From NCBI GenBank assembly GCA_023515725.1, contig JALDTO010000135.1:124647-188646 (forward strand): DNA of 64,000 nucleotides, read 5' to 3'. Origin of the DNA: Amoeboaphelidium protococcarum X5 (Eukaryota; Fungi; Aphelidiomycota). Both the position numbers and the translations under genes were made by a program. Of the stretch, positions 2,092 through 48,530 are shown piece after piece (the stretch's first letter is position 1; every line of letters begins with the position of its first letter). Under the pieces are notes generated by a model. That model was not told where the DNA came from. It did not search any database and saw only the letters and a program-made list of their open reading frames with translations.

Positions 2092-2954
2092 TCAATAGCT
2101 GCGTTGTTGAGTAACACTTTATACTCTTGACTCATTCAGAAAAAATAATATTATCGGTTATTTAATGGACTATATATATTTGTTTCATATCATACTATTC
2201 TGTTACTGGTATATCACATGAAACAACTAGTATAAGACTGATAGAAAGGGAACCACAGTCCCTGGGAACATAAAGGTCCCGAGGACAATATACTGTACAT
2301 ATTAGGTATTCGCTAAATTAAATCTTGTCGCTGAAGGAGACGCGTATTTTATCGCTACTTCATTCATTAAAGTCGACGATACTTTTACTGCCATAAGTCT
2401 CTTACTCGCTTTGCCATGTTCATGCCAGAAATGAAACAAGATCCGCAAAGGTAATTTTTAAAACAGACACCATTAAATGTAAGCCTAACTGCCAATTGAT
2501 TTCCATATTCATTTCATTTCAAGACTTATTCAATGGAATAGAAGTCATAGTGGTTTTTATTCAAATATCTTTATCATTGTTTTGACTTAATTATGCAGCA
2601 AATCATGTAGGCAAAGTTTATTTTTATCCTCGCGCGAAGCACCGTTGTGGTGGCTAACAGCGAGAACATCAGCTGATCAACAAGGCGAGAAACGGATAAA
2701 ACAATCACAGAAGCTGCTGATAAATTGCCAATCTCCCTCCTTTTCCCTTTTCTTTTCTATTACTATCCGTTTGCCATCCGGTAAACTCCATCTAATAGTG
2801 TTTTCCATCAGTCCCTTTATAATTCCATCCATCTTGATAGATTGGCTCATCCCCATTCTATCACTACTCCATCTCATCGTCATCTCCAGCCCATCGTTAT
2901 CGGTTGCTTATCACAAAGGATTTGCAAATTGCTGAATTGCCGCTATTATAATAA

Positions 2955-5408
2955 ATGCAGCAAAGTAAAAAGTAGTCACATTTGCCGAATAATAATGGTA
3001 GTGTTTAAGCAGCGAGAGAGTAAAAGGGTGATGGCTCTCATGGTGAGGTGAGAAATTCTGGTGGTCAGCTGTAGTCTTCATCCACTCCGTCCAAGAAGGG
3101 CATCTCTGCTAATCATCTGCTCAATTTCACTTTGCCTCCACGTTAGCCAAGTCATTCTCAGTAGTTTAATTCCGGTAGACACTCCAACCATAAAAGAGTA
3201 AATCATCAGCCGTATGTAAAGGAGAGATTTGTGAATGCCAATTACCGGTTTGTGGTTAAAACTGATGAATTCGGCAAGGATATGAATCCTGATCAATTGG
3301 TCACTTGGAGCAATGTAGAGTTGGTCTTACAGCTGGCTGCTGAGCCTGATGATATACAGTGTCCCATCTGTCTGTGCCCGCCCTCAGTGCCAAAAATGGG
3401 AAAGTGTGGTCATGTATTTTGCTATAGTTGCATTTTGCATTATCTGTCCATTGTTGATTCTATGCGTGTAAAGTGTCCCCTCTGTCATGACTCAGTTTGC
3501 AGCAAAGATCTGAAATCTTGTCAGGTGATTCAATGCAGTGATTACAGCAAATCGCAAAAGATTTATGGTACTAGTAGGTAGCCAGTGATGGCAATGACTT
3601 TGATGCAGCGATCGAATGCTAGTATCACCACTTTGCCAAAGTTTAATTACTCCAAGTGGGCCAATTCTAGTATGCCAAAGTTGCAGCAGGATTGGGATAT
3701 GAATTTGATAAAGTGGTCAAAGGTGTTGGTGGCGTACCCCAGTGTCATTCTACATCACATCATCATGCCAGAGATTGTGTAATTGGAGTATTTGCTGCAG
3801 GAGGCATAGAGTGCTAATGAGAACGATGAGGCGTTGTACCTGGAGATGGCCATCAGTGAGCAGAAGGAGAGGGAGAGAGTGTTGCTGTAGCGTTCACCAG
3901 CACTGCTCTCACAAACTGACCATCACAACACAAAGATGTCAATGCTAGATGTTCGCCAACTGAGCTCATCTCTGCCATCTAATGCTCCTGTTTTGGATGA
4001 TTTATAATTACCACCCTCGGCCAGTATTACGATTAAGGCCACAGTGATGGAAGATCCTTTTGCGGATATAGAGAGAAGTATTCAGGAGTAGGTGGAGACT
4101 GGCAGTTCTGGTGGTGCATAGTCATTATCAGATGGTGCGTCCACGTCATCTCTGTCGAGTCGTAAAAGCGTTGTACTGTCAGGTGAGTAGAAATAGTTAA
4201 CTAGTCAAGGATTCAAGTACGGCATCAATGCGACAAAGGGTCCTTTAGATGGTACTTATTATTTCTACCAATGTTCTGATGGCCAGTATTTGTTCCTTCA
4301 CCCGTTGGATATTAAAATTATCAAAAGTGCCTTTGGTGAGTATCATGACTTTCCGCATGAGATTTATGCCACCATCAGTGTGGTGACTGAGACCACAATG
4401 ACTGAGGAAGTTAGAAAGAAATATCGCTATCTGGGGCATCTTCCTCTAGGATGTGATGTATCATTCATAGAACTCGATTGGAAGAAGCCTGTTCTATGCA
4501 GGTAGTAGTTGATGAAGAACGATAATTAAAGTGGAGTGTACATTGAAAAGTATCTTGCAGGAGATAGTAATGATGAATTGAATCAAGTTTTAACTGATGA
4601 ATAGATTAGCCATTGGTTGTCTGAACTGGATAGTCGCCACAAGCGTCATGAATAGAAAAAGAGAAAGGAGGAGTAATCTGCTAGAAAGAACAAGAAGCAA
4701 CAGTCCAAATCTAATGATTCTGTGAATTTGGATGAACTGGCGAGATTCGATGGTGGTACTAGTGCCAGGACTCATGTGGAAATGTTTGATTTTGACGATG
4801 AAATTGCATGGTAGCCTCTTCCATTGAGCCCAGTATCGCAATCTAGTAAATCTGGCGGTCCCCTGGTATGGAATTAGTCTAGTGTTAATTTTGGTGTTTA
4901 TAAGAAAAATTAGAAAACCGCAAACAATAGCTAAAACAATTATAATAATAATAATAACAGTATAATTTAATCCAACTCATACGCAAAGAAGGCCCGTCCG
5001 CGTTCTTATAATGAGCTGTTCCCATAGATGGATGTTGGCCTCACGCCACCTTCAAATGGTATGAGTCCACCTAAGCACGGATCCGACCGTAAGAATAAGT
5101 CTTTTGCGTCCATCACCGGGATGAATAATTGTAATGAAGGTAAAGATGAGAATGTCCATGTTTAATATGCAATGATGGCTCAGTAATCATCATAGTCACA
5201 TAGTAATCTTGCAACGGCAGAGGTTAACGCTAATGTTGATGATAACGCGTCTGGTCAAGATCAAGATCATTAGCAGTAGTAGTAGTAGTAGTAGTAGTAG
5301 TAGCAGAAGGGGAAAAAGAAGAAGAAGCAGAAGGCAATTTTGCTGTTCAGCAATAGTGGTAACAAGAAAGGTGCTTATTAATCTCACGCACCTGTAGCTT
5401 TATAGTGA
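2955..5408 (+). CDS. RNF10: RING finger E3 ubiquitin ligase, RNF10/Mag2 family (817 aa)
   Basis: Motifs NHLLNF, KERFVNANYRFVV, RING CPICLCPP..CGHVFCYSC..CPLC, YYFYQCSDGQYLFLHP, C-terminal KKKKKQKAILLFS; single frame to TGA 5406. Confidence 0.93.
5271..5306 (+). repeat. (TAG)n microsatellite encoding an in-frame 12-residue polyQ tract in RNF10
   Basis: TAG CAG (TAG)9 CAG in the RNF10 frame, upstream of the conserved C-terminal KKKKKQK..LLFS motif. Confidence 0.9.
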
Positions 5409-36833: not shown

Positions 36834-39212
36834 ATGGGTAAAGGTTAGGAAGCCAAATCAAACTATCAGTAGTAATCCTACCTTAGGTATTAGCTATCGT
36901 TGAACTGCGGAAGTTTACCCCATGGGTACGCGTTGCTTCTGGCTCAAGTAGATAAGACTGTCAAATCACGGCAATCATCATCATAATCTTCGTCATCAAC
37001 ATCAACATCAAGTGTTCGAAAGGCAAAGCGAAATGGTATTAATGGTAAAGATAAGCAAAAGTAGTAATAGTCGTAGCAAGATTTATCTTTAGCTGCCTGC
37101 GAAAAGCATCTTAAACTGGCATCACGTAATGACAATAGTAGCAAAGGACAGTTTGGATTAGACATGAGTGGTATGCGATTGTTCCGTCTGAGTCCTAGCA
37201 TTTACTCCTATGTTGATCAGTTGCAAGTTTTAAATTTGGGTCATAATCAATTTAGTGAATTTCCGTCAGCGATATTGCAGTTAAAGTAATTAAGAGTGTT
37301 AGATTTATCTTCCAACTAGATCAGGTAGATTCCTTTTGAGATTTTCAAGTTGGGTCAACTGGTGGAGTTTTGGATCTTTGACAATAGCCTCGCTGATATT
37401 CCGGTGACCATTGGCCTATTGCCGCGACTCTAATTTCTAGGCGTTGAAGGTAATCAACAGCTAAATAGGATTTATGTGGATATGTTATACCGACTCGGTA
37501 CTGAGGGACTGGTTGCTCAGCTCAGAGACTCTCTTCCTCAAGAACTTCTGATCCCATACATGTATCCTGTGCGCCGATGGATTTAAATCTCCCCCGCGCG
37601 TCAAGATCCATTCTAGGCCTCGTTCAGAGTTATCACCTTCAACATATTGAGTGAGAGATATGCGAAAATGGACAGGTACTGGCACTCGCCATAATCTGTG
37701 GTTGACTTCAAGTATAGATGGCCCCGTATTGAATTCACCTTGCGCGCACTATCTCAAGATTACAGGGAGAATGGCATCATCATATGCTTACAGGAGATTG
37801 AAAGTTCTGTATGGTAGTAAAAGTTTTTTGGTGGTTGGATAAGTGCAGAATCTTCAGAATTCGTATGTGCTCACTTGATGTAGGAAGGTGACGCAAAGTG
37901 TAGACCACTTTAATTTGAAGACTCGCTGTGGGATGGACTATTTATGCCCAAGTCGCGATGGAGATTTCTGTCAGTGTAGAAGAGATACAATAACAATTAA
38001 TCCTCCTCTTCTAATCTACATCAAAACTCTGATGGTTAAACGGACGCTGCAAACAACAAAAGTAATGACAATAATAATCGGCTGCCTGGATCTGATGGTT
38101 GTTCTATATTGTGGAATACTTAATTTTTTTAACGATTAGACATGAAGCCATTCACTGCCGAGTTCTCCCGCCTGGCTCTAAATAGAAATGACTTTGTGAA
38201 GAGTGATATTCTATTCCAGAGATTTGTGAGTAAGGACAATATAGCTGTTGGTTGTGTCTTGCAGTCAATGGTCAATAGAGACAAGTTCATATTCATAGTG
38301 AATGTTCATATACATTGGGATCCTCAGTTTGCGGATGTTAAATTCGTCTAGAGTGTAATGCTGTTGGATGAGATGAAAAAGTATTATCAGTTGGTATTGC
38401 AGAAGTTTCCACACATCCAGGATATTGATATGGTTCTTACTGGAGATTTTAACTCACTACCAACCAGTCTAGTGTATGCCTATGTCACATCGTCTGATGA
38501 TGGGGTATGTAATATTGGGGAGCACAAAGATATGGCGCCATGCTTCGGTGACACAACACCGCCTGTCCAAGTGAAAAGCACAGACAGCATTCCCAGTTAG
38601 AATGAAGTGGTGGGCGATGGTCAAGGCACTGATGAGATACAGAATTTGAATACTGATGAGGTTGATAGTGATGGTGATGTGGATCCAGATACGGAGTCAC
38701 AGCAATGTATTAAAAAGTTTCGTAATTGGAAAGAGTCTGATTATGGCAGGATATCAAGCAGTGACTCGTGCCAGCATCATTTAGGCAAATAGCTACTAAG
38801 TGCGTATAGATCTGTGGAGGATAAAGATGTAACTGCGGATGGGGTAGTTGGACTTCCATTTACAAACCATACGGACTCTTTCACCGGTGCAATTGATTAC
38901 ATCTTTCACTCTGACTCGCTACACCTAGAAAGAGTATTGGGTGGTTACCTGCTGCATAAGGATCAGAGTACCGCTAAAGATATTAATCTAGATGTTGTGG
39001 CCAAGCAGAATCATGTCAGATTGGCAATGGACCACAATCAAGAGACTACCTCTCTGTTCATAATGACTAACACGTTTCGCCAGAATGGACCTCTGGATAA
39101 ATTGCAATAACAACAACTGTTCTCTATTGAAGGTGTCGAAAGTTTTGGATTTCCCAACTACACGTTCCCATCTGATCATATCCCACTTTGTGCAGAATTT
39201 AGACTAATCTGA
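36834..39212 (+). CDS. CCR4: Ccr4 deadenylase (LRR + EEP nuclease)
   Basis: LRRs (LNLGHNQF, LDLSSNQI), TFNILS, ICLQE, HIHWDPQFADVK, GDFNS, IDYIF, FPSDHIPL. Confidence 0.9.
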
Positions 39213-39465
39213 ATGATGGTTGGATAGACAGATGATACTTTTTACTTTACACGCGTCTATTGTGGCATACGATAACTGTTAAGAATAAAGTATGTATAGA
39301 ATGAATAAATCATGAAAAATTACAATAGAAGTGATGTATAAAATAAGAAGCGATTATTCAAATGATGAAGCTACAGTGTACATAAATCAACTCATGACAT
39401 TCAGTAGAGAGTACCAAGTATAATCATTTAATCAATGTTAATCAATTCCAATTCAATTATACATA

Positions 39466-40017
39466 TCAACCCTCTAATAGAGCCAGAATCATTCTATAAA
39501 GGTAGTAGAAAAACGAGAGCATGTAGAACCCAAGCTTAGCGAAAGCTTCCTTCTTGTGCATGCCAAGTGTTCGGAATATCTCAGTGGCATCCAGTACGTG
39601 TCTCTACTTTTAAAAGTTGTATACGTGATAACCGAGCAAGGGGAGATTCCAAGCCAGTGCCATAAATTGTCCACCCAACAGGAACATGACCACCAACACG
39701 GCATGAAGAGCATACTCGGGCAAGATGAACTACATACATATACACACGCTCATTAATGCAACATAGAATGGAAGTTAAATCACTGATTAATCCAGTATGA
39801 ATCGCTTACCTGATTAAGTTTTTTACATAAATCTATAGGATTAATAAAATCACATTCCAAATCTGAAAACATTATAATCTACATGTAGATCGTAAACACA
39901 TTTCGGATATCTAGAACTACCATCACCAAAGCATAATCTTACAAAGAACACCATAATAAATAAGAGTACAGCTGCCATGAATACAGCGAATAGAAATAGA
40001 CCCGATTCCCACGTCAT
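39466..40017 (-). CDS. ERV14: Cornichon/Erv14 cargo receptor
   Basis: [41 protein letters not shown]; introns 39879-39942 and 39730-39809. Confidence 0.95.
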
Positions 40018-40172
40018 GTCTTGTATCTACTTTGTATGTGTATACGTGAAATATTGGAAATGATCTTAAATCTGACGGAAAAGAAGGTGAATAAGGATGG
40101 CCTCAAAGACTTGAAGAGAATTTAAAGATAAATTGCCAACTAGAAAATGGCATAATTTTTAAAATAGATATA

Positions 40173-41213
40173 TCAAGCAATCTTATAGTTTTAAAGGAAC
40201 TTGTCAATGCCTGCACTCAAGTCAGGATCGGCTTCTTACGCGTCCACAAGCTGTCGATTGAATACTGAAGAGACGGACTGGGCGACAATGTCCATTAGTT
40301 CACTTGACACTGGAACATTTCGCCCAATCTCGGCAGATATAGATGTAATACCATAGTTGCTACCATCACTGAAAGCATCGCCGCTCTTCTTATACTTGAA
40401 TCCACAAGGATCAAATAAGGAATACCAGCGATCGGTATCCACATTACAGTTAAGTGAGAAGCCATGAGATGTTCGTCTAGTCCGTGGCGACACGTTAATT
40501 CCAAGTGCGGCAATCTTGTCACATTTCCACATGGATTATCCATCATTAATAGACTATGAATGATGATTCTACTTTTATATCCAAACGCCAGTTAGTGCAG
40601 ATCTATCATGGCTTGGTTCTTAGTTGCTCGATTCTGATTATGATGACAATTATTAAGACAGCAGATCTTCTGCGCGTCTACTTTATATGCCATACCCATC
40701 TTAACATGCTCGCATAACAACACTCTCCAAGTCATAGACATAACATCTCACGTTACCTGTAGACGGCCGTTTAGTGCCTGGCTAGCAAGTACCATCGCGC
40801 AGGTTGGACAAATTCAATATTGGATACACAACCAGCTAACCAGGTCCATGGAAGGTCAATTTACCACCTCTATTAGTAGTGACATAATCTGCACCATGTT
40901 GAGCATAAAACTATCGCGTCCACTCCAAGGCTTACGTGTCTTGATTATTCGCCAACCGTCTACCAGCCGTGAATGTTGGCAAGTGTTCCGTCATCAGTAT
41001 AACTTCTTTACCAGCATGCTTGGATAATAATGACTATGACTTAGCTAGTATTGAATCCTTATTGAACAGATTGTGTTGTTATCCATCATTATTTGTACCA
41101 GCGATAAGATCTAAACTAAGATTATGTTGTAGTCGGTGTTGCAACTCATACACCGGAGCGAACCTCTACAGACCGCTCAGCCTTTTCACCAAAATTGGAG
41201 GAGCTTTTTACAT
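40173..41213 (-). CDS. LIP2: Octanoyltransferase (LipB/Lip2)
   Basis: EHLPTFTAGRR, RGGKLTFHGPGQLVVYP, KIAALG, TSHGFSLN, PCG. Confidence 0.93.
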
Positions 41214-41389
41214 ATCAATACGTCTTTGAGCGATAAATTAAATATAGTTTTTACTCCTGTAACTCAATGCGTTTTATTGTACTTGAAGAACAATGGTTTG
41301 ATCTACAAACTGAAATCCGATCAGCGAGAAACTAAACGATCAATCAGATAGATTCGTTTTTGTAATTAAGAAATACAAACGATATAAAG

Positions 41390-42262
41390 ATGACTGTATA
41401 GCAGGAAGATATATTTAATTTTGACGTGTCTGAATTCGCACCCATCTCAGAATAGCGGAAGGAGTGTGATAGATGTCTTCGATCGTTGTCAATGTGTTTT
41501 TGCAGTCACCTGCCGGATGAGCCTGTGCAACTCAGCAGTGATACTGATGATATTCAATCTCCCCGCTGTTCAGTCATTGTTTTCTAGCATAGTAATGAGT
41601 GTGGTCATAAAAAGTCTACTGGACATCTAATACCGGAAGTGCTTGGATATGCGCGTATTTACTAATGTAAAAAGATTATAGAAAGTCCAAAGATTGGTGT
41701 ATAATACTCGAAATCTACAGTATCATTTGACTCGGTCTTGAGTGATTTGCGTGATACTGTTGGCAGTCAGTAGCGAATCTAGCCAGTCCTGATATTTCCA
41801 TCTAAAAATGCAACTTCCATGGATAAATTTATCTCTCAATAACTATTAGATGGTTATACAGGAGAAGGCGATAGAAATAGTACTGAAATGTGCCATTATG
41901 TGTTTATATTCATTGACGCGACGTGGCCATCCGCTATTAGGCTGCGCTCTGGGCCACTCGCCAATTTACCATCGATAGTGTTGGATGTTAACAGGTTGCA
42001 ATAGATTCGTGATCAAGATTGTAATTAACCGTCTAGATATAGTCTTATAAGGAAAGAAATTGACAATGGAATGTCTACATTGGAGGCTGTTGCTTGCTGT
42101 TTGCATGAATTCAACAGTTGCATTGCTTCTTCATCTGGATTGTCTTCAGAGTTGTAACATCATGCAAAGTTGCTTTTGCGCGTCTTTGATCAGATGGTTG
42201 ATATGCAACTTGAACACATTCCCATAGACAAGCAAAAGGTTCTTTCCACTGAAGCATCGTGA
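41390..42262 (+). CDS. DTWD2: DTW-domain tRNA aminocarboxypropyltransferase (DTWD2/TapT-like)
   Basis: C..C......CFC, QHSNE, STG, LIFP, IDATW, IRKE, MSTLEA. Confidence 0.88.
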
Positions 42263-42370
42263 TGAATAATTCTACTCCCTTTAGTCATATTTAATTTTTA
42301 TTGTTTTTTGCTTTTAGATCTTTCATATATGTTTAAAAGTGTCTTTCAGTTGGAAGAGAGAGCTGTCAAA

Positions 42371-43552
42371 TCACATCCACTCTCTCCTAATAAAGTCACA
42401 GATTGCAGTGTAGACAACCAACATAACACCTCCACCTACACAATGAAAATTTAATAATAATTAGGAGATATATACATAAGTATAAGAGAATTCTTACCAG
42501 GGCCAAGTCGCACAACTTTGGGAACGAAACCTTTCCACAGAGCAGCAGGGCCTTCATTTCGCGCAATGTTAAACATCAAAGGGTGACTCCATTGACTTGA
42601 CGCACCACCACTGCTGTTTTGAATTCTCGTCTTCACCACATCGTATGGAGTATTTAATAGGGTGGCACATGTTCCTGAAATCACACCAATCGTAAAATCA
42701 ATCATGGTATCATACGAACTACCCTTCACGACTTGCTCCTACTTCAGTTTCACCACAGCATCCGTCTACTTGATGTATCCAATGACACCGAAGTACGTTC
42801 CACTCCACACTGCATGCCGCCATAGAGTCGACTCTAGTCCTCGCCAAAAGCCAGCCACACCTGCAATGAGGCCACCAGAGCTAGCACTACCTTGGTAAAT
42901 CTGTCGTACACAATCAAGAGTTCCGCTAAACTGTGCCTTCTTTGCGGGGTCCTGCAGATTGATCTTGATTAGTTCAAATGGCACCACAATGAATGCCTCT
43001 GTACAGCCAGCCATTATACCTGTGCAGAATCCTAAAAGAATTTTGGCATTTCTATTACCAGACTACTTATGTGATTAATCGCGTGAACTTGCAACAGTGT
43101 TCAAATCGACAGTCGGATGATGCTTAAAGTATGGAACATTCTCTTTCAACCAGTGAGTATACTAATCATTTGTAGAGAATTTGAGTGCACGCTTAGGTGC
43201 TTCCAATAGAATGGGAGGTATAATTCCACGGTACAACGATGCGAACCCCTCCCGCTTCACAATGTTACTCAACATGCCAACCATGCTTGACCGGGGTGCT
43301 ACTGGCGCTATTGCAGAGGCTCCCAAATCAGCCGCAATAGACTTGGTACTTAATTACAAACGCGTTTTGATCACATCCAGAGGATAGAGTAATAGAATTT
43401 CAGTAATGCCTACACACATTTGGAACTTTAAAACTTGGTTCTGATTATCAACAACAAAAGTAACAGCTCTCACCAGCAACTCCGCCAGCCAACAGTTGGT
43501 ACTTGAACGGAAGTGGCTACTACTATAATTATTACTAATCTGACCGTTTCAT
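42371..43552 (-). CDS. ODC1: Mitochondrial 2-oxodicarboxylate carrier (ODC/SLC25A21)
   Basis: PLPFKYQLLAGG, YPLDVIKTRLQ, LYRGIIPPILLEAPKRALKF, PFELIKI, PYDVVKTRIQ, RLGPGGG; introns 43410-43473 and 42436-42497. Confidence 0.93.
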
Positions 43553-43610
43553 TGACACAGTGAAGTTGCAATAATTAAATTCACGTGTGATGATACAACT
43601 AGACTTCCGC

Positions 43611-43632
43611 AGAGAGAGAGAGAGAGAGAGAG
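43611..43632. repeat. (AG)11 microsatellite just upstream of the ODC start
   Basis: agagagagagagagagagagag. Confidence 0.9.
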
Positions 43633-43974
43633 ATTGCAGAGAGAAACGTGTAACGGAGAACAGAGACGCGAAACCTCAAAGCGTAGAGACTGATTGATTG
43701 ATAGCAAGATTGGACTGTGCAAGAGATTACTGTAGATTTGTCTCATTCCCCAAACAGGATCGATTCCGTTGACATTGAGTCGGTGGGAGTTGCTCTCTCA
43801 GTACTCGTCTCAAAGTAATCATTGTAAAATACAATCTACGTTGACATGATATTTATGCCGTCCTGTTATATGGACCGTATTCATGATCAGAGAGACATTA
43901 ACTCTAATCGAGAATTGAAAATAAGTTTGCGGATTTACCTTGTCGCGAAAAGTACAATGCTCTTATTGTTAAAA

Positions 43975-46658
43975 GTGCAAAGTGCAAAAACGGAAACCGT
44001 TAAGGTTGACGTTGGAAGAATGCGCGAGCGATCGAGCGCGCGACGGTGATCTCGCAGAAAACAGACAAGTCAGTTGTTTCAAACAAATCCTCAATGATTT
44101 TGCATTAAACTTTTTGTATTAAATCCACTTTCAATCTCAGTCTCCATATTATCTGTCTTGTTCAAATACTACACTCATCCATGGTACCAGAGCAATTGTT
44201 TGTCTTGAAGCTAGTTGGTTTGAAGTTCCCCCAATGTGCGATGAACTTATCCAAATCACCGCCAAAGTGCTTTCTCAGACATTTCATGATCGGGCAGTAT
44301 TGCTTCACGTAGAATGATTTGGCGCCAGCTGATAACCCGACGGTTGAGCCAGGATCATCCACTGCAAGAATGGCCTCCAACTTCGCCATGGCAGTCTTCG
44401 CTTTTCTCACTTTCTCTCTCCCAGGCATATCATTCACAACTTCATCCTACTGAACAGCTGTGATGGCAGGTACAACATCAGCTACGTCAGTGTCTTCTTC
44501 ATCGGATTCATAGAGTTCATCATCAGAGTGAACCGCAGCTTGTTCACGTAACTATCTGGAAGAAGATTATTGAGAAGTCAGAGTAGATTTTGGCTACTTC
44601 AACTTAGCTGATTGAGTGGCAGCAATCAATCCATTCGCATAAAGCTCAAGCATCCTACGCAGCTCATTAATCTCCTCCGGAGTGGCATTAGGTGCAATTT
44701 CTTTCAACTTTGCCTCAATAAGCTGCAGCACAGTCTCTTTCTTCTGCAACTGGAGAAGTGCATCGTAAATCACTCTAGGTCCACCAACTGCATCAACATC
44801 AGATAATCCACATAAGCTACGAACAATCTCTTGACTCACCTGCTGCAGACAAAAATTGCCTCTAGAATGGGCAGCATTCAGACTGCGAGCCATCTATAGC
44901 TACTCACAGTAGGCTGATCTGAATTTGCTTACCACGGAAGACACGTCCAAACGTCTAGTCTTCGCTAATTCTAGCAAATAGCTAGCATCCTTCTTATACA
45001 ATGCGGCATTAGCGGACGAAGCGTGTCGCGCACTCTTAGTGATGTCAATCTCTGATCCCATTCCCCAAACAGCAAGCAAATAGCCAGTCTTCCTACTAGT
45101 GTGCGTACCAAATTTACCATCGGGATTGCCGGTAGCAATCTTACAAGCTTTCTGATACTGCCTATGATAAGATACGTAAGAGATGTTGTACGCCGCATGC
45201 CCAACTTGCTTCACAGCATCCAGTGTACTCTCTTGAGGGAACAAGAATCCAGTTCTAATCCCAGAAATAAAAATCCACGTCAAAAGCGCACGAACCGGGC
45301 ACAATTCGGGCACATCATAATCCGTCCAAAGAGTCAAGCACACTCTAACACGATCAGACTTGCCTTTAATGTAGAAAGCAAGGGAAGATATACTGCCATC
45401 ACTTTGAAAGGTCGCAAGATCCTTGTTGAGACAATTTTCCAGCCTAGGATCATGAATTTTCAAATCGGTGACTTCATCATTGCGCAGAAATAGCTTGATA
45501 CTAACGATAATCATCGTCCACATCATGAATGACTTCGCATCATTTTTCGAGATGAAATACTCGCGGAGACGTAGTAATTCCCAAGGTGTGAGCGGCTAGC
45601 TGCCTTCGGACACGTAGCTGCATCCATCGCGGGAGTTCAATCTCTACATGTTAGTCATGAGGGAAGAATTCTTTGGATCTCCACCCAGCCAAATACGAGG
45701 AGCCATCGGATGGAACCGACAGCCAGATCTATCACCACGCTCAGAACGTTGGATGCACTCTTCGCAGATATCTCTGTACTCCCCCCTCTAATTACGACTA
45801 TCATGCAGCACAGAGACAGCCGATAACAACTGGTCAACATTCTGTGGCATATTCCAACCACCCTAGCACTTGATATCGTGCCCATAGACACATTTCACAG
45901 CGTTGCCATTCTCGTCTTTTAGCAAAGAACCCTTCTCATTACGCTTGAACTTGATAAACAAAATGATGCTCTTGGCGTTCATTGACGGTGTGTACTGCGG
46001 GGGGTTAGGAAGCAGCATTAAACTCGAGCTGTAGTCACCAATTAGCGCAAAAAAGTACCGCAATCCTCTGTAATGCTTCTAGTAGGCTTACATACTATTC
46101 ACAGCCAAAGGCCTACCGCCAGTGAGTGGCACAGATACGTCGGATCGAGTCAACCTCAGCAGCTTCAACGTCTCTCCAATGCCTTCATCCAGCTTATACT
46201 TGTACGCCGCTTCAATGCGATACACATGGCTGTTCTCCGACTTCTTGCGTCTCTTCACCTTCTTCGCCAACTGCTCATCATCCAGACCATCATCAGAGTC
46301 GTAATCGTCGTCGTCATCTTCATCTTCATTCTCCAGCTACCTATTGAAAGCAGCACTGACTTGAGCAGAACTTTGTGAAGTGATATCAGCAGTTTGATTC
46401 ATGCTAACAACACTTGTTTCAGCCTCGCACCCAGCCAGACCAGAACTTGAGGAGGCGGATACGCCGACACTACTGCCAACACCAGCACACTCATCAACGG
46501 CTGGGATGCCAGTACTACTGTTGGAGGTGGTGATACCACCTCCAGATGGCTACGAGTCACTCTACACTGCTCTAGAACGCTTCCTGCCAGACATGCGAGA
46601 CGGTCGAGATTGTAACAAAGCGAGTTCGGTGCGTTTCTCCGGGTGCAAGGTGCAAAAC
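43975..46658 (-). mobile_element. Putative Crypton-like tyrosine-recombinase DNA transposon (boundaries tentative)
   Basis: Single YR gene bracketed by GTGCAAAGTGCAAAA (43975) and GTGCAAGGTGCAAAA (46643); no long TIRs, RT or gag seen. Confidence 0.55.
44162..46594 (-). CDS. Tyrosine recombinase (810 aa, intronless, table 6)
   Basis: Full catalytic set: FLRNDE (R), KGKSD (K), CPVRAL, LFP, THTSRKTG (HxxR), ARH (H), ALY (Y); CEEC..CRFH putative Zn motif; acidic stretch plus KKVKRRKK NLS. Confidence 0.88.
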
Positions 46659-46757
46659 ACTACCGGTGCAAAAGAAAACAAGCGTTTTATTTGTTTTAAA
46701 AGAGTCAGATACAATAACATACAGATTTCTATTACATCAAATATCAAATATAATCAG

Positions 46758-48530
46758 TCACGTTCGTTCAGGAGCAATGAACACTTATACGTACGCCGAC
46801 TCTTTTCCTTCCCGGTCACTTTCTGATGATTACTGAGAAGGAGCTTTAAATGTCGCAGTAGTGGATGAGTTAAGTTTAATCTTGAACGTTACGATATCCT
46901 TGTAAGCAGTCCTTGCACAGTCTTCTCTTATATCATTGAGCAGTCCCCATTCCTCAAGCAGTCTTGTCTGGTGATAGAGCGTAATTTGCTTCTTATCAGA
47001 GTTCAGCTTTTTATACTCCAGTCTGAATCTTCGCCGACAATTTTGACCACAATAGTGAATATTATTTACATCATCATACTCTGTGGGCGTGTCAATAGCA
47101 TTGATATTCCGTACTGATTGCCTTAAATGGGGCAGGATATTAGCGTTCTCTGCAAATTCAGGCTCATTATAACCGTCAACAGAGCTTATGATGGCTCTCA
47201 ATTTCTCTGATGTAACCAGTGAAGATAGTTCATACACTTGCTTCATAAAGCGAGTTTCATATATTTTTCCCATAAAGTTGCGGACATCAACCACGGTATT
47301 CTCTCGTGCCATTGAACGTTCTTGTTACTCCTCTGCGGTATATCGTTGCAATTATGATGAGCCCGGGTGAAAGCCTTCAAATTTCACAGGATCCTAATTC
47401 AGTTTAACTGTAGCAACATGTTATTCATACCAGCCAACACCGCTAGATCCGACTTTACCAAAATTCATAGTTCTCGATATCTCTGGCCGTATACATCCGC
47501 GTTACTTGTGCTGGTCAGAATGCCGGAGCCAGTCATCCCAGTAAGTTTATGGCCAGCTATCGCGCAACTCTGCTGTCCACAACTACTTTTTCAACATCCA
47601 CCCAAGACCAGGGAAGAAGTCTGAGAGATAGAATGAATACGGATCTTCAATCAAATTTAGTTTCCCATTATCATTCCAGGCTGATATGCAAAACAATGTG
47701 TCATCTGCTTCCAAGACGGGCAAGAATGCCTGAAAGTAATCATAAAAATCCGGCGCTATTTCCATATCATCTTCAAGAATTATTGCCTATTAAAACTGCA
47801 TAACGTCGAATACTTGCGACAGAGCCCACTCGTAATGCCTGGATATTTTATAAAATGCAACGTAATCTTCGTGCCCTTTCTTTGTTACAGGAGTGGATTA
47901 ATCTGGTTACTACATAACTTATGACATGAAATATACCGCGGGAGAGCATTAACAAGTCTTACCTTTATATGCAGCACGCGATCAGAATATTGTTTAATGA
48001 CCTGAGAAGTTTCCTCGTGACCGCAATCCTGACTAACAATGATGGCAACATTCTCTTGCGGTTTATACTTGAGCAGACTGTCTAGAGCTCGTGAGACAGA
48101 TGGCCTATTACAAGCAATGACCAGAACTGCAATATGAGCCGGCGAAGGCTATACCTCAGGTATCTGCAGATTAACAAGTTTCAACTAATCATCAGCCACC
48201 TTGTCTGGGTGCAATAAATCTTCTTAAGGCTTAATAGGCGGTTTGAAACCTGCTGTCGATGGCGCTTGAGGTGCAGTGTCAACATCTTGGTCCGGCATTA
48301 ATCTCTACATTGTTAAGTAAATTCGATAATGTATATAGAAATGAAAATATTGGGATGGGTATATATACCTTTTGTGTTCCATCGACTTCTGTGGGATAGT
48401 TCTTTTCATTAAGAGCGTCAGATTCATCATTGACAGGGCCTGACCAAGTTAGAGTAAACATTCCATATAGGATGAGTGCAATACTAATAGCCATAACTAG
48501 CCTTACAACCTTTTTATTATTTATACTCAT
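46758..48530 (-). CDS. MGAT1: Alpha-1,3-mannosyl-glycoprotein beta-1,2-GlcNAc transferase (GnT-I, GT13), paralogue A
   Basis: N-terminal TM; VIACNRP, VSQDC, YKISRHY.WAL, ILEDDMEIAPDF, CISAWNDNG, DFFPGLGWML, WDDWLR, CIRPEISRT, RTAYKDIV; introns 48305-48368 and 47910-47962. Confidence 0.93.

Follow-up and report, generated by a model that had tools for sequence, protein, structure and literature searches.

The locus, its reading frame and its genetic code

The DNA considered here, referred to throughout as the window, is a stretch of 64,000 nucleotides from Amoeboaphelidium protococcarum X5 (GenBank assembly GCA_023515725.1, contig JALDTO010000135.1, positions 124,647 to 188,646 of the forward strand). 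It contains a gene for a tyrosine recombinase (YR) that an initial reading, made from the letters alone and called the sequence-only reading below, had assigned to a Crypton-like element. The open reading frame (ORF) of this recombinase occupies 44162..46594 on the minus strand, where 810 sense codons are followed by TGA as the sole stop. On one side of it lies a mitochondrial-carrier gene and on the other a GNT-I gene, in keeping with the original description of a gene between housekeeping genes. The ORF is in turn part of a 2762-bp unit, delimited by the shared limits of its copies, which spans 43953..46714 on the minus strand with its 5′ end at 46714. The interval 44162-46594 first given for the element thus holds for the ORF and falls short of the mobile unit.

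The recombinase frame contains 15 in-frame TAG or TAA codons read as sense (13 TAG and two TAA) and no internal TGA. When 44162-46594 is translated on the minus strand with the bacterial table, the product falls into fragments, each break occurring at a TAG or TAA; under translation table 6 it is the single intronless frame of 810 residues that had been proposed. Elsewhere in the window, 26 other TGA-free frames of 350-1119 codons hold 645 TAA/TAG against 500 CAA/CAG codons. Because so many further frames are full of these triplets, TAA and TAG are, judged from codon content, sense codons throughout this genome of 23.6 Mb and about 40% G+C. There is a practical lesson here for annotation, since the standard code breaks the gene into fragments and thereby hides the element. 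Protein searches in this work used the stop-free pieces separately, and the joined frame (table 6, or X at TAA/TAG) served only in local pairwise alignment. A (GA)n simple repeat stands in the left flank, at 43604-43644 of the window.

Extent, copies and termini of the element

A search of the source genome with window positions 38000-47500 returned about 20 other places, whose matches start at 43950-43957 and end at 46714-46732. At least 21 full or nearly full copies are present at 100% identity, together with about 11 contig ends that carry 72-88 bp of either end of the element. The 19 copies fetched with both flanks are all 2762 bp long, and the sole variable positions among them are 3, 2586 (A/C) and, in one copy, the last base; one further copy lacks the last 28 bp, and one contig of 2575 bp (C203) consists of element sequence alone. 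The ORF takes up 2433 bp, or 88% of the unit, with no other gene inside. Pfam-type scans of the 2762-bp unit yielded no reverse transcriptase (RT) or DDE transposase match, and the earlier statement that no RT/gag or DDE gene lies nearby agrees with this result.

The other eukaryotic elements known to carry a YR are DIRS/Ngaro retroelements and Starships. It could be supposed that the gene is a remnant or a non-reverse-transcribing derivative of the former, or part of a larger Starship-like cargo element reaching beyond the window, and the feature-based Atlas neighbours of the protein do include a DUF3435 cluster. However, every copy shares the same 2762-bp limits with unrelated flanks directly outside, the ORF fills nearly all of this 2.76-kb unit, no RT, RNase H, methyltransferase or DUF3435 match was obtained, and the termini show neither split nor inverted repeats. 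An origin of this kind is considered extremely unlikely.

The termini of the unit are simple in structure. Each end carries a 5-bp core, the left one (43953..43957) reading TACAA here and TAHAA across copies, and the right one (46710..46714) reading TACAA. Just inside the left core, at 43958-43974, stands the arm TG-CTCTT-ATTG-TTAAAA, while the right end carries the arm TTTTAAAAGAG(TCAGA) at 46694..46709; both were read directly from the ends. Judging by their letters, joining the ends in a circle would place the two arms on either side of the core as an imperfect inverted repeat. Between the two 160-bp ends there is no inverted or direct match longer than 8 bp. Short GTGCAA(A) units are found at both ends, with two in tandem at the left (43975..43987, plus strand) and three at the right (46643..46671, plus strand) that are oriented like the left pair, and five of the six GTGCAA units in the element thus fall within 72 bp of an end.

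Several copies are located inside other repeats, as seen in the left flanks of L032 and L039 and in the right flanks of L035, L039 and L057. One of these host repeats contains a hairpin (..TCAAAGGTG..CACCTTTGAGGA..) and another contains CTGATACTAAC, which suggests that preferred targets lie within other repeated DNA. In addition, a repeat of about 150 bp (C98:~1432057-1432206) starts approximately 255 bp beyond the right end of one copy of the element. It recurs in at least 18 other places across the genome, with 88-99% identity, and could represent a small non-autonomous element.

Target site, empty sites and point of exchange

A junction logo was compiled from 25 left and 25 right junctions. 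On the left, the flank ends in A-R and is followed by the core TA-H-AA and the element's first bases, TGCTCTT; on the right, the element closes with AGAGTCAGA and the core TA-C-AA, beyond which the flank opens with N4-W-TA-Y. Joined across the element, the flanks and one core give a target consensus of 15 positions, A-R-TAHAA-N4-W-TAY. The purine before the left core is present in 25/25 junctions, and to the right of the element position +5 is A or T in 23/25, +6 is T in 25/25, +7 is A in 24/25 and +8 is C or T in 25/25. In the window, this target-side motif, consisting of five variable bases and then TAC (TA-Y), lies at 46715..46722, and the same bases occur in an element-free homeologous contig, C156. 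Read outward, R-TA and TA-Y make a short palindrome in which 8 bp separate the two TA dinucleotides, an arrangement that would match the geometry of a tyrosine-recombinase core site.

The genome contains homeologous contigs that are 82-95% identical to the element-bearing ones, and these provide empty sites for comparison. In two clean pairs of filled and empty sites (C155 versus C232 and C245 versus C205), the left flank, one core and the right flank align without a gap, and all six homeolog joints found in total hold exactly one 5-bp core. Further copies and empty sites had been named at the outset as the check for mobility, and the genome supplies both, in the form of at least 21 copies and these six single-core joints.

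The two cores of a filled site do not behave alike. Base 3 of the left core is A in 11, C in seven and T in seven of 25 junctions, whereas the right core is TACAA in 24/25 and TACAG in 1/25, with C at base 3 in 25/25; the two cores differ at this base in 18/25 cases. In the element-free homeologs C176 and C158, core base 3 is the same as in the left core of the corresponding filled site, and the informative comparisons of cores with homeologs are TAAAA versus CAAAA and TATAA versus TATAT. The cores are consequently not a duplication, because the left core follows base 3 of the target and the right core keeps the C of the element; in other words, the left core is derived from the target and the right core is carried by the element. 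As read from the junctions, the exchange probably takes place 3′ of core base 3; otherwise, a heteroduplex would have to be resolved in the same direction every time.

Beyond the right core, the five variable bases are identical in the element-free homeologs, and they therefore come from the target. Two other explanations for these bases were considered and rejected on the same observation, namely a coupling sequence carried over in the manner of Tn916 and a TA target-site duplication combined with variable element ends. Cryptons carry direct repeats of 4-6 bp at their two ends that mirror the target sequence and do not arise by duplication, and the ends found here are of this kind. In Cryptons, short direct repeats have been described as substrates of site-specific recombination (PMC3212892; PMC13465315), and the core pattern at these junctions is, by its sequence, the Crypton pattern.

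The recombinase: catalytic domain

The catalytic domain comprises residues 334-564 of the protein (44903..45595, minus strand), as delimited by a structural model, Foldseek matches and conserved columns. The catalytic set is R371, K412, H498-x2-R501, H524 and Y533 in full-frame numbering, with nine residues from H524 to Y533. An alignment of 41 relatives (A1) conserves the corresponding columns of the 231-residue catalytic piece, which are R38, K79, H165, R168, R190-H191 and Y200, and the complete R-K-HxxR-H-Y set claimed in the sequence-only reading is therefore a property of the family. An exhaustive HMMER search with the 231-residue piece (window 44903-45595, minus strand) retrieved 700 relatives at E≤1e-3, and 39 of these reached E≤1e-30.

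An AlphaFold (AF2) model of the catalytic piece, built with the alignment of 41 relatives, had a mean predicted local distance difference test (pLDDT) score of 97.3. Its best Foldseek matches were XerH, Cre, XerA, lambda Int and Tn1549 Int, all at a probability of 1.0, and VIA-align gave Z scores of 17.4 for Cre, 16.7 for XerA, 16.0 for XerH and 15.5 for lambda Int. Lower scores were obtained for Ndc10 (Z 7.4-8.8) and QRICH1 (Z 7.8). On the basis of the model, the piece is predicted with high confidence to have the Cre/Xer/lambda-integrase fold; the lack of a match to that fold, which had been named as grounds for abandoning the Crypton assignment, was not what was found.

Pfam/NCBIfam scans of nine stop-free pieces produced nothing usable, and Pfam-type scans of the pieces and relatives yielded no GCR1_C, DUF3504, DUF3435, RT or DDE match. 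Among the 41 members, sub-threshold Pfam matches were to NDC10_II (11/41) and Phage_integrase (3/41), and none of the 41 catalytic domains matched DUF3504 at E≤0.1. Searches of PDB sequences with the catalytic piece and with catalytic and N-terminal profiles returned no match, and a word-based protein search gave two short matches only, owing to its length window.

The recombinase: accessory regions

Relatives align with the protein across residues ~110-810, with local BLASTP E values down to 1e-140, and the whole architecture is thus a family trait. It has four parts. A CCCH cluster marks the N-terminal region, which is followed by the catalytic domain and a helical subdomain; a disordered linker then leads to the C-terminal helical domain. 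Relative to the catalytic domain, the extra N-terminal region amounts to ~330 residues and the C-terminal extension to ~245 residues.

In the N-terminal region, the features that had been noted as an acidic stretch and a nuclear localization signal were found as EDEDDDDD at residues 90-97 and the basic KKVKRRKK at residues 111-118. Closer to the catalytic domain, at residues 277-295 (45710..45766, minus strand), is a CxxC-x11-CxxH cluster whose columns in alignment A3 (C137, C140, C153 and H156) are each at least 90% conserved. A Cys/His cluster had been recognized at this place from the start, and only its spacing, originally given as x13, needed correction to x11. By its residues the cluster is a probable zinc site, and the N-terminal region as a whole may act as a core-binding domain.

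Behind the catalytic domain, the helical subdomain (residues 568-666; 44597..44893, minus strand) is conserved in alignment A2 and is modelled as helices in relative P0005, with pLDDT ~90; its sole Pfam match is a weak one to HTH_61 (E 0.07). The C-terminal helical domain follows at residues 717-810 (44165..44446, minus strand). Its module C772-x3-H776 ... C801-x6-C808 is nearly invariant among 46 relatives (A2), which bears out the earlier mention of Cys and His residues in a small C-terminal domain, and the homologous part of P0005 is modelled at pLDDT 90-98. The C-terminal region had no Pfam match in the 46 members, GCR1_C included, just as had been surmised, and no structural neighbour in the PDB or the ESM Atlas (best Z 4.5).

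Copy number and activity

Depth in sequencing runs was taken from Logan contigs and is therefore a rough guide. In the source run, word depth is 2770-3500 in the element and 68-82 in its flanks, which corresponds to about 40 copies. In another sample under the same organism label, the element stands at 91.5 and the flanks at 50-94 (~2 copies), with three single-nucleotide differences and two junction pairs, one of which is shared with a contig-end copy of the source genome. The element is present, with 0-1 differences, in runs filed under two other organism labels as well; in one of these it occupies the insertion site of the copy on C179. Two metagenome scans, one with the window's right junction and one with the element's right end, found nothing. 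Taken together, the identity of the copies, the contrast in copy number and the absence of the element from homeologous sites indicate a burst of copies that was very recent and specific to the strain.

The same three observations effectively rule out domestication. The gene could have been a host recombinase kept by selection at a single locus between the mitochondrial-carrier and GNT-I genes; its frame is intact and intronless, it is written in the code of the host, it retains all catalytic residues and it sits between ordinary genes. However, at least 21 near-identical copies have different flanks, homeologous sites are free of the element, the copy number differs ~20-fold between samples and the unit has sharp common ends. 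The probability left for a domesticated gene is vanishingly small. The sequence-only reading had left the choice between an active and a domesticated element, and the evidence favours the former and speaks against the latter; a single-copy syntenic orthologue, the finding that would have indicated domestication, is not what this genome holds.

A further alternative is a small circular plasmid or episome that encodes a Flp-like recombinase and would be maintained mainly outside the chromosomes, the chromosomal copies having arisen from it by secondary integration. The depth of ~40x, compared with 21 full copies and ~11 contig-end fragments, could be taken as a sign of such a molecule, as could the contig made up entirely of element sequence (C203) and the many relatives on metagenome contigs of 2.3-3.5 kb. 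On the other hand, no circle-junction sequence occurs in the assembly with one mismatch allowed, the source-run contigs contain no “go back” joint, which an abundant circle would give, and the unit has no replication gene. The excess depth is explained by copies that are collapsed or broken at contig ends, and a plasmid is regarded as very unlikely, if somewhat less so than the alternatives weighed above.

We read the element, with a probability of roughly 0.9, as an active, autonomous Crypton-type DNA transposon and not a host gene. The Crypton assignment of the sequence-only reading is upheld by the YR-only coding capacity, the fold, the lack of RT and DDE matches and the 5-bp direct repeats that match the target. 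Several observations nevertheless weigh against this view or parts of it. Neither a circle junction (at the same mismatch limit) nor a tandem copy was found in the assembly, and no circle joint was found in the contig-level read data, although the latter is weak evidence because rare forms are dropped from such data. No Pfam family reaches threshold for the recombinase family. The target TA at +6/+7 is one base closer to the core than the TA of the element's left end, so that the target does not simply replicate the site presumed for the element. The constant C of the right core misfits a symmetric heteroduplex overlap of 6-8 bp that is resolved randomly. Lastly, with respect to the subgroup discussed below, membership in CryptonS follows from description and taxonomy and not from a tree with reference sequences, and the core is TACAA/TAHAA in place of the TATGG or TTACTG of CryptonS, albeit of the same length class (5 bp, with TA).

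Possible exchange of flanks between copies

In three of the five copies tested (the window copy, the C57 copy and the copy at C98:1428641), the homeologs of the two flanks are not adjacent to each other. Each of them abuts the homeolog of a flank of another copy, and the joint falls precisely at the core. Contigs with such joints are C156:92900-94800 (L050), C235 (L055), C176 (L072) and C158 (L073), and the copies concerned are L038, L041, L043, L049 and L058, along with that of the window. An empty site had been anticipated in an ODC-MGAT1 adjacency; in the homeolog, the GNT-I side does continue without the element, but it adjoins the homeolog of the left flank of the C57 copy and not the carrier gene.

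The swapped flanks reflect either misassembly across a 2.76-kb repeat of 100% identity or recombination between copies. A test for a simple reciprocal exchange involving the window and C57 copies gave no sign of one. It is conceivable, though we consider it rather unlikely, that the ~40 identical copies not only insert but also exchange flanks, either through the recombinase acting on the ends of different copies or through homologous recombination. If true, flank exchange would have reshuffled chromosome arms in one of the subgenomes over a very short period.

Proposed mechanism

In the mechanism that we propose, the recombinase would excise the element as a circle by recombining its two cores. 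The circle would join the imperfect inverted repeat ..AAAAGAG-TCAGA-TACAA-TG-CTCTT.. around the core, and it would also bring together five GTGCAA units in one orientation, three on one side of the core and two on the other. The extra zinc-type domains at the N or C terminus of the protein may bind these units as accessory sites. Integration of the circle would then proceed by conservative site-specific recombination at targets matching A-R-TAHAA-N4-W-TAY, where exchange presumably takes place 3′ of the third core base, and a burst of such integrations would have occurred very recently in the source strain.

Significance

Cryptons are among the least understood of the eukaryotic transposons, and their circle mechanism is largely inferred, while the known copies are mostly old and few. 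CryptonF elements of fungi and oomycetes were reportedly described by Goodwin et al. in 2003 and by Kojima and Jurka in 2011. The element described here is a new, very young and apparently active member of this known element type. Its family offers dozens of identical copies, empty sites, a target consensus of 15 positions, a mapped exchange point and a strain with ~2 copies, and with this combination, excision, circle formation and target choice can be tested directly. The element is also a transposon that can be expressed only under a code in which TAA and TAG are sense. Moreover, it draws attention to a large unannotated protein family of ~700 members that has no Pfam model and that possesses two conserved zinc-type accessory domains.

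Relatives and classification

The named relatives of the recombinase are hypothetical proteins of the chytrids Zopfochytrium, Blyttiomyces, Quaeritorhiza, Physocladia, Chytridium and Irineochytrium and of the oomycete Aphanomyces, and the Aphanomyces proteins are among the closest, with 41-46% identity. Many other relatives are encoded on metagenome contigs of 2.3-3.5 kb, and the nearest ESM Atlas clusters consist of domain-less proteins of Oomycota and Bacillariophyta. In a literature search, we came across no paper that reports Cryptons from aphelids or chytrids. Among the full-length relatives, the closest, P0152, is encoded on a JGI metagenome contig (L068) between a gene for a 325-residue protein of the Phage_integrase family and a MULE transposase fragment (flanking items at 91-1068 and 4193-4873), a transposon-rich neighbourhood in another organism.

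The source genome also holds a second Crypton-like family with the same domain architecture, which shows 40% identity in the catalytic piece and is present as a single copy at C264:~1093580-1096170 (L052 3081-5668), where a run of N covers its left end. Its protein is 97% identical to MP228_004128, a hypothetical protein of A. protococcarum whose 90% cluster has 14 members, and the family occupies a different locus in the A. protococcarum assembly GCA_023515745.1 (L071 2388-4964). It is adjoined by two long TGA-free frames (C264:1090500-1093030; L052 1-2529), one of ~450 codons that looks like a transposase/integrase core and one of 438 codons that is P-loop helicase/primase-like. Finally, stop-ridden, weak matches to the catalytic piece at 35-49% identity (C135:20951-21319, C179:505022-505396 and C154:380992-381111) look like decayed older recombinase fragments.

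CryptonS elements have been described from oomycetes and a diatom as YR-only units of 2.8-3.9 kb and 3-30 copies, with no GCR1_C, a conserved C-terminus and terminal repeats of 5-6 bp (Kojima & Jurka 2011, PMC3212892). Going by its architecture, this description and the taxonomy of its relatives, the element probably belongs to CryptonS or a sister lineage. No DUF3504 domain, the mark of CryptonA, and no GCR1_C, that of CryptonF, was detected. The other option is a new group outside F, S, A and I that is centred on zoosporic fungi and aphelids. In its favour, the named relatives are mostly chytrids, the core TACAA is unlike CryptonS cores, the sub-threshold NDC10_II matches point towards CryptonF-like recombinases, and the CHCC C-terminal domain is without a Pfam or PDB counterpart; but the closest relatives include oomycete proteins, those of Aphanomyces, the Atlas clusters nearest to the protein come from oomycetes and diatoms and lack a Pfam domain, and the CryptonS description fits every architectural feature tested. 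A separate group therefore appears possible but doubtful. The suggestion of an undescribed group in aphelids is weakened, in that the whole architecture is common to hundreds of chytrid, oomycete and metagenome proteins and fits CryptonS.

Comparison with known systems

The resemblance to CryptonS extends to a YR as the only gene, a length of about 2.8-3.9 kb, a copy number of 3-30, the absence of GCR1_C, a conserved C-terminal region, direct repeats of 5-6 bp and the lack of inverted repeats. The differences concern the terminal repeats, reported for most described CryptonS members as TATGG or TTACTG (PMC3212892), and the host, which is here an aphelid-like holomycotan with TAA and TAG as sense codons, the named relatives being mostly chytrids. 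With the CryptonF elements of fungi and oomycetes, the element shares short direct repeats on which recombination acts and a circular intermediate, itself a proposal, and 11/41 of its family members show weak NDC10_II matches; GCR1_C, however, is found neither in this protein nor in the C-termini of 46 relatives. Ndc10/Cbf2, a CryptonF-derived protein, is structurally distant, its Z scores of 7.4-8.8 being far below the 15-17 of Cre, Xer and lambda Int.

The bacterial, archaeal and phage recombinases Cre, XerA/XerH and lambda integrase have the same catalytic fold and the R-K-HxxR-H/W-Y residues, and the candidate site of the element likewise consists of a short core with imperfect inverted arms. 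In contrast, sequence identity to these enzymes is 12-20%, and only the element's recombinase has the CCCH N-terminal region and the CHCC C-terminal extension. It would also use many loosely defined chromosomal targets, as opposed to one att or dif site. In this last respect it resembles the integrases of Tn916 and Tn1549, YRs that insert a circle into many AT-rich targets of low homology and of which Tn1549 Int is itself a structural match; unlike those conjugative systems, the element shows no sign of carrying over coupling sequences and encodes no conjugation machinery.

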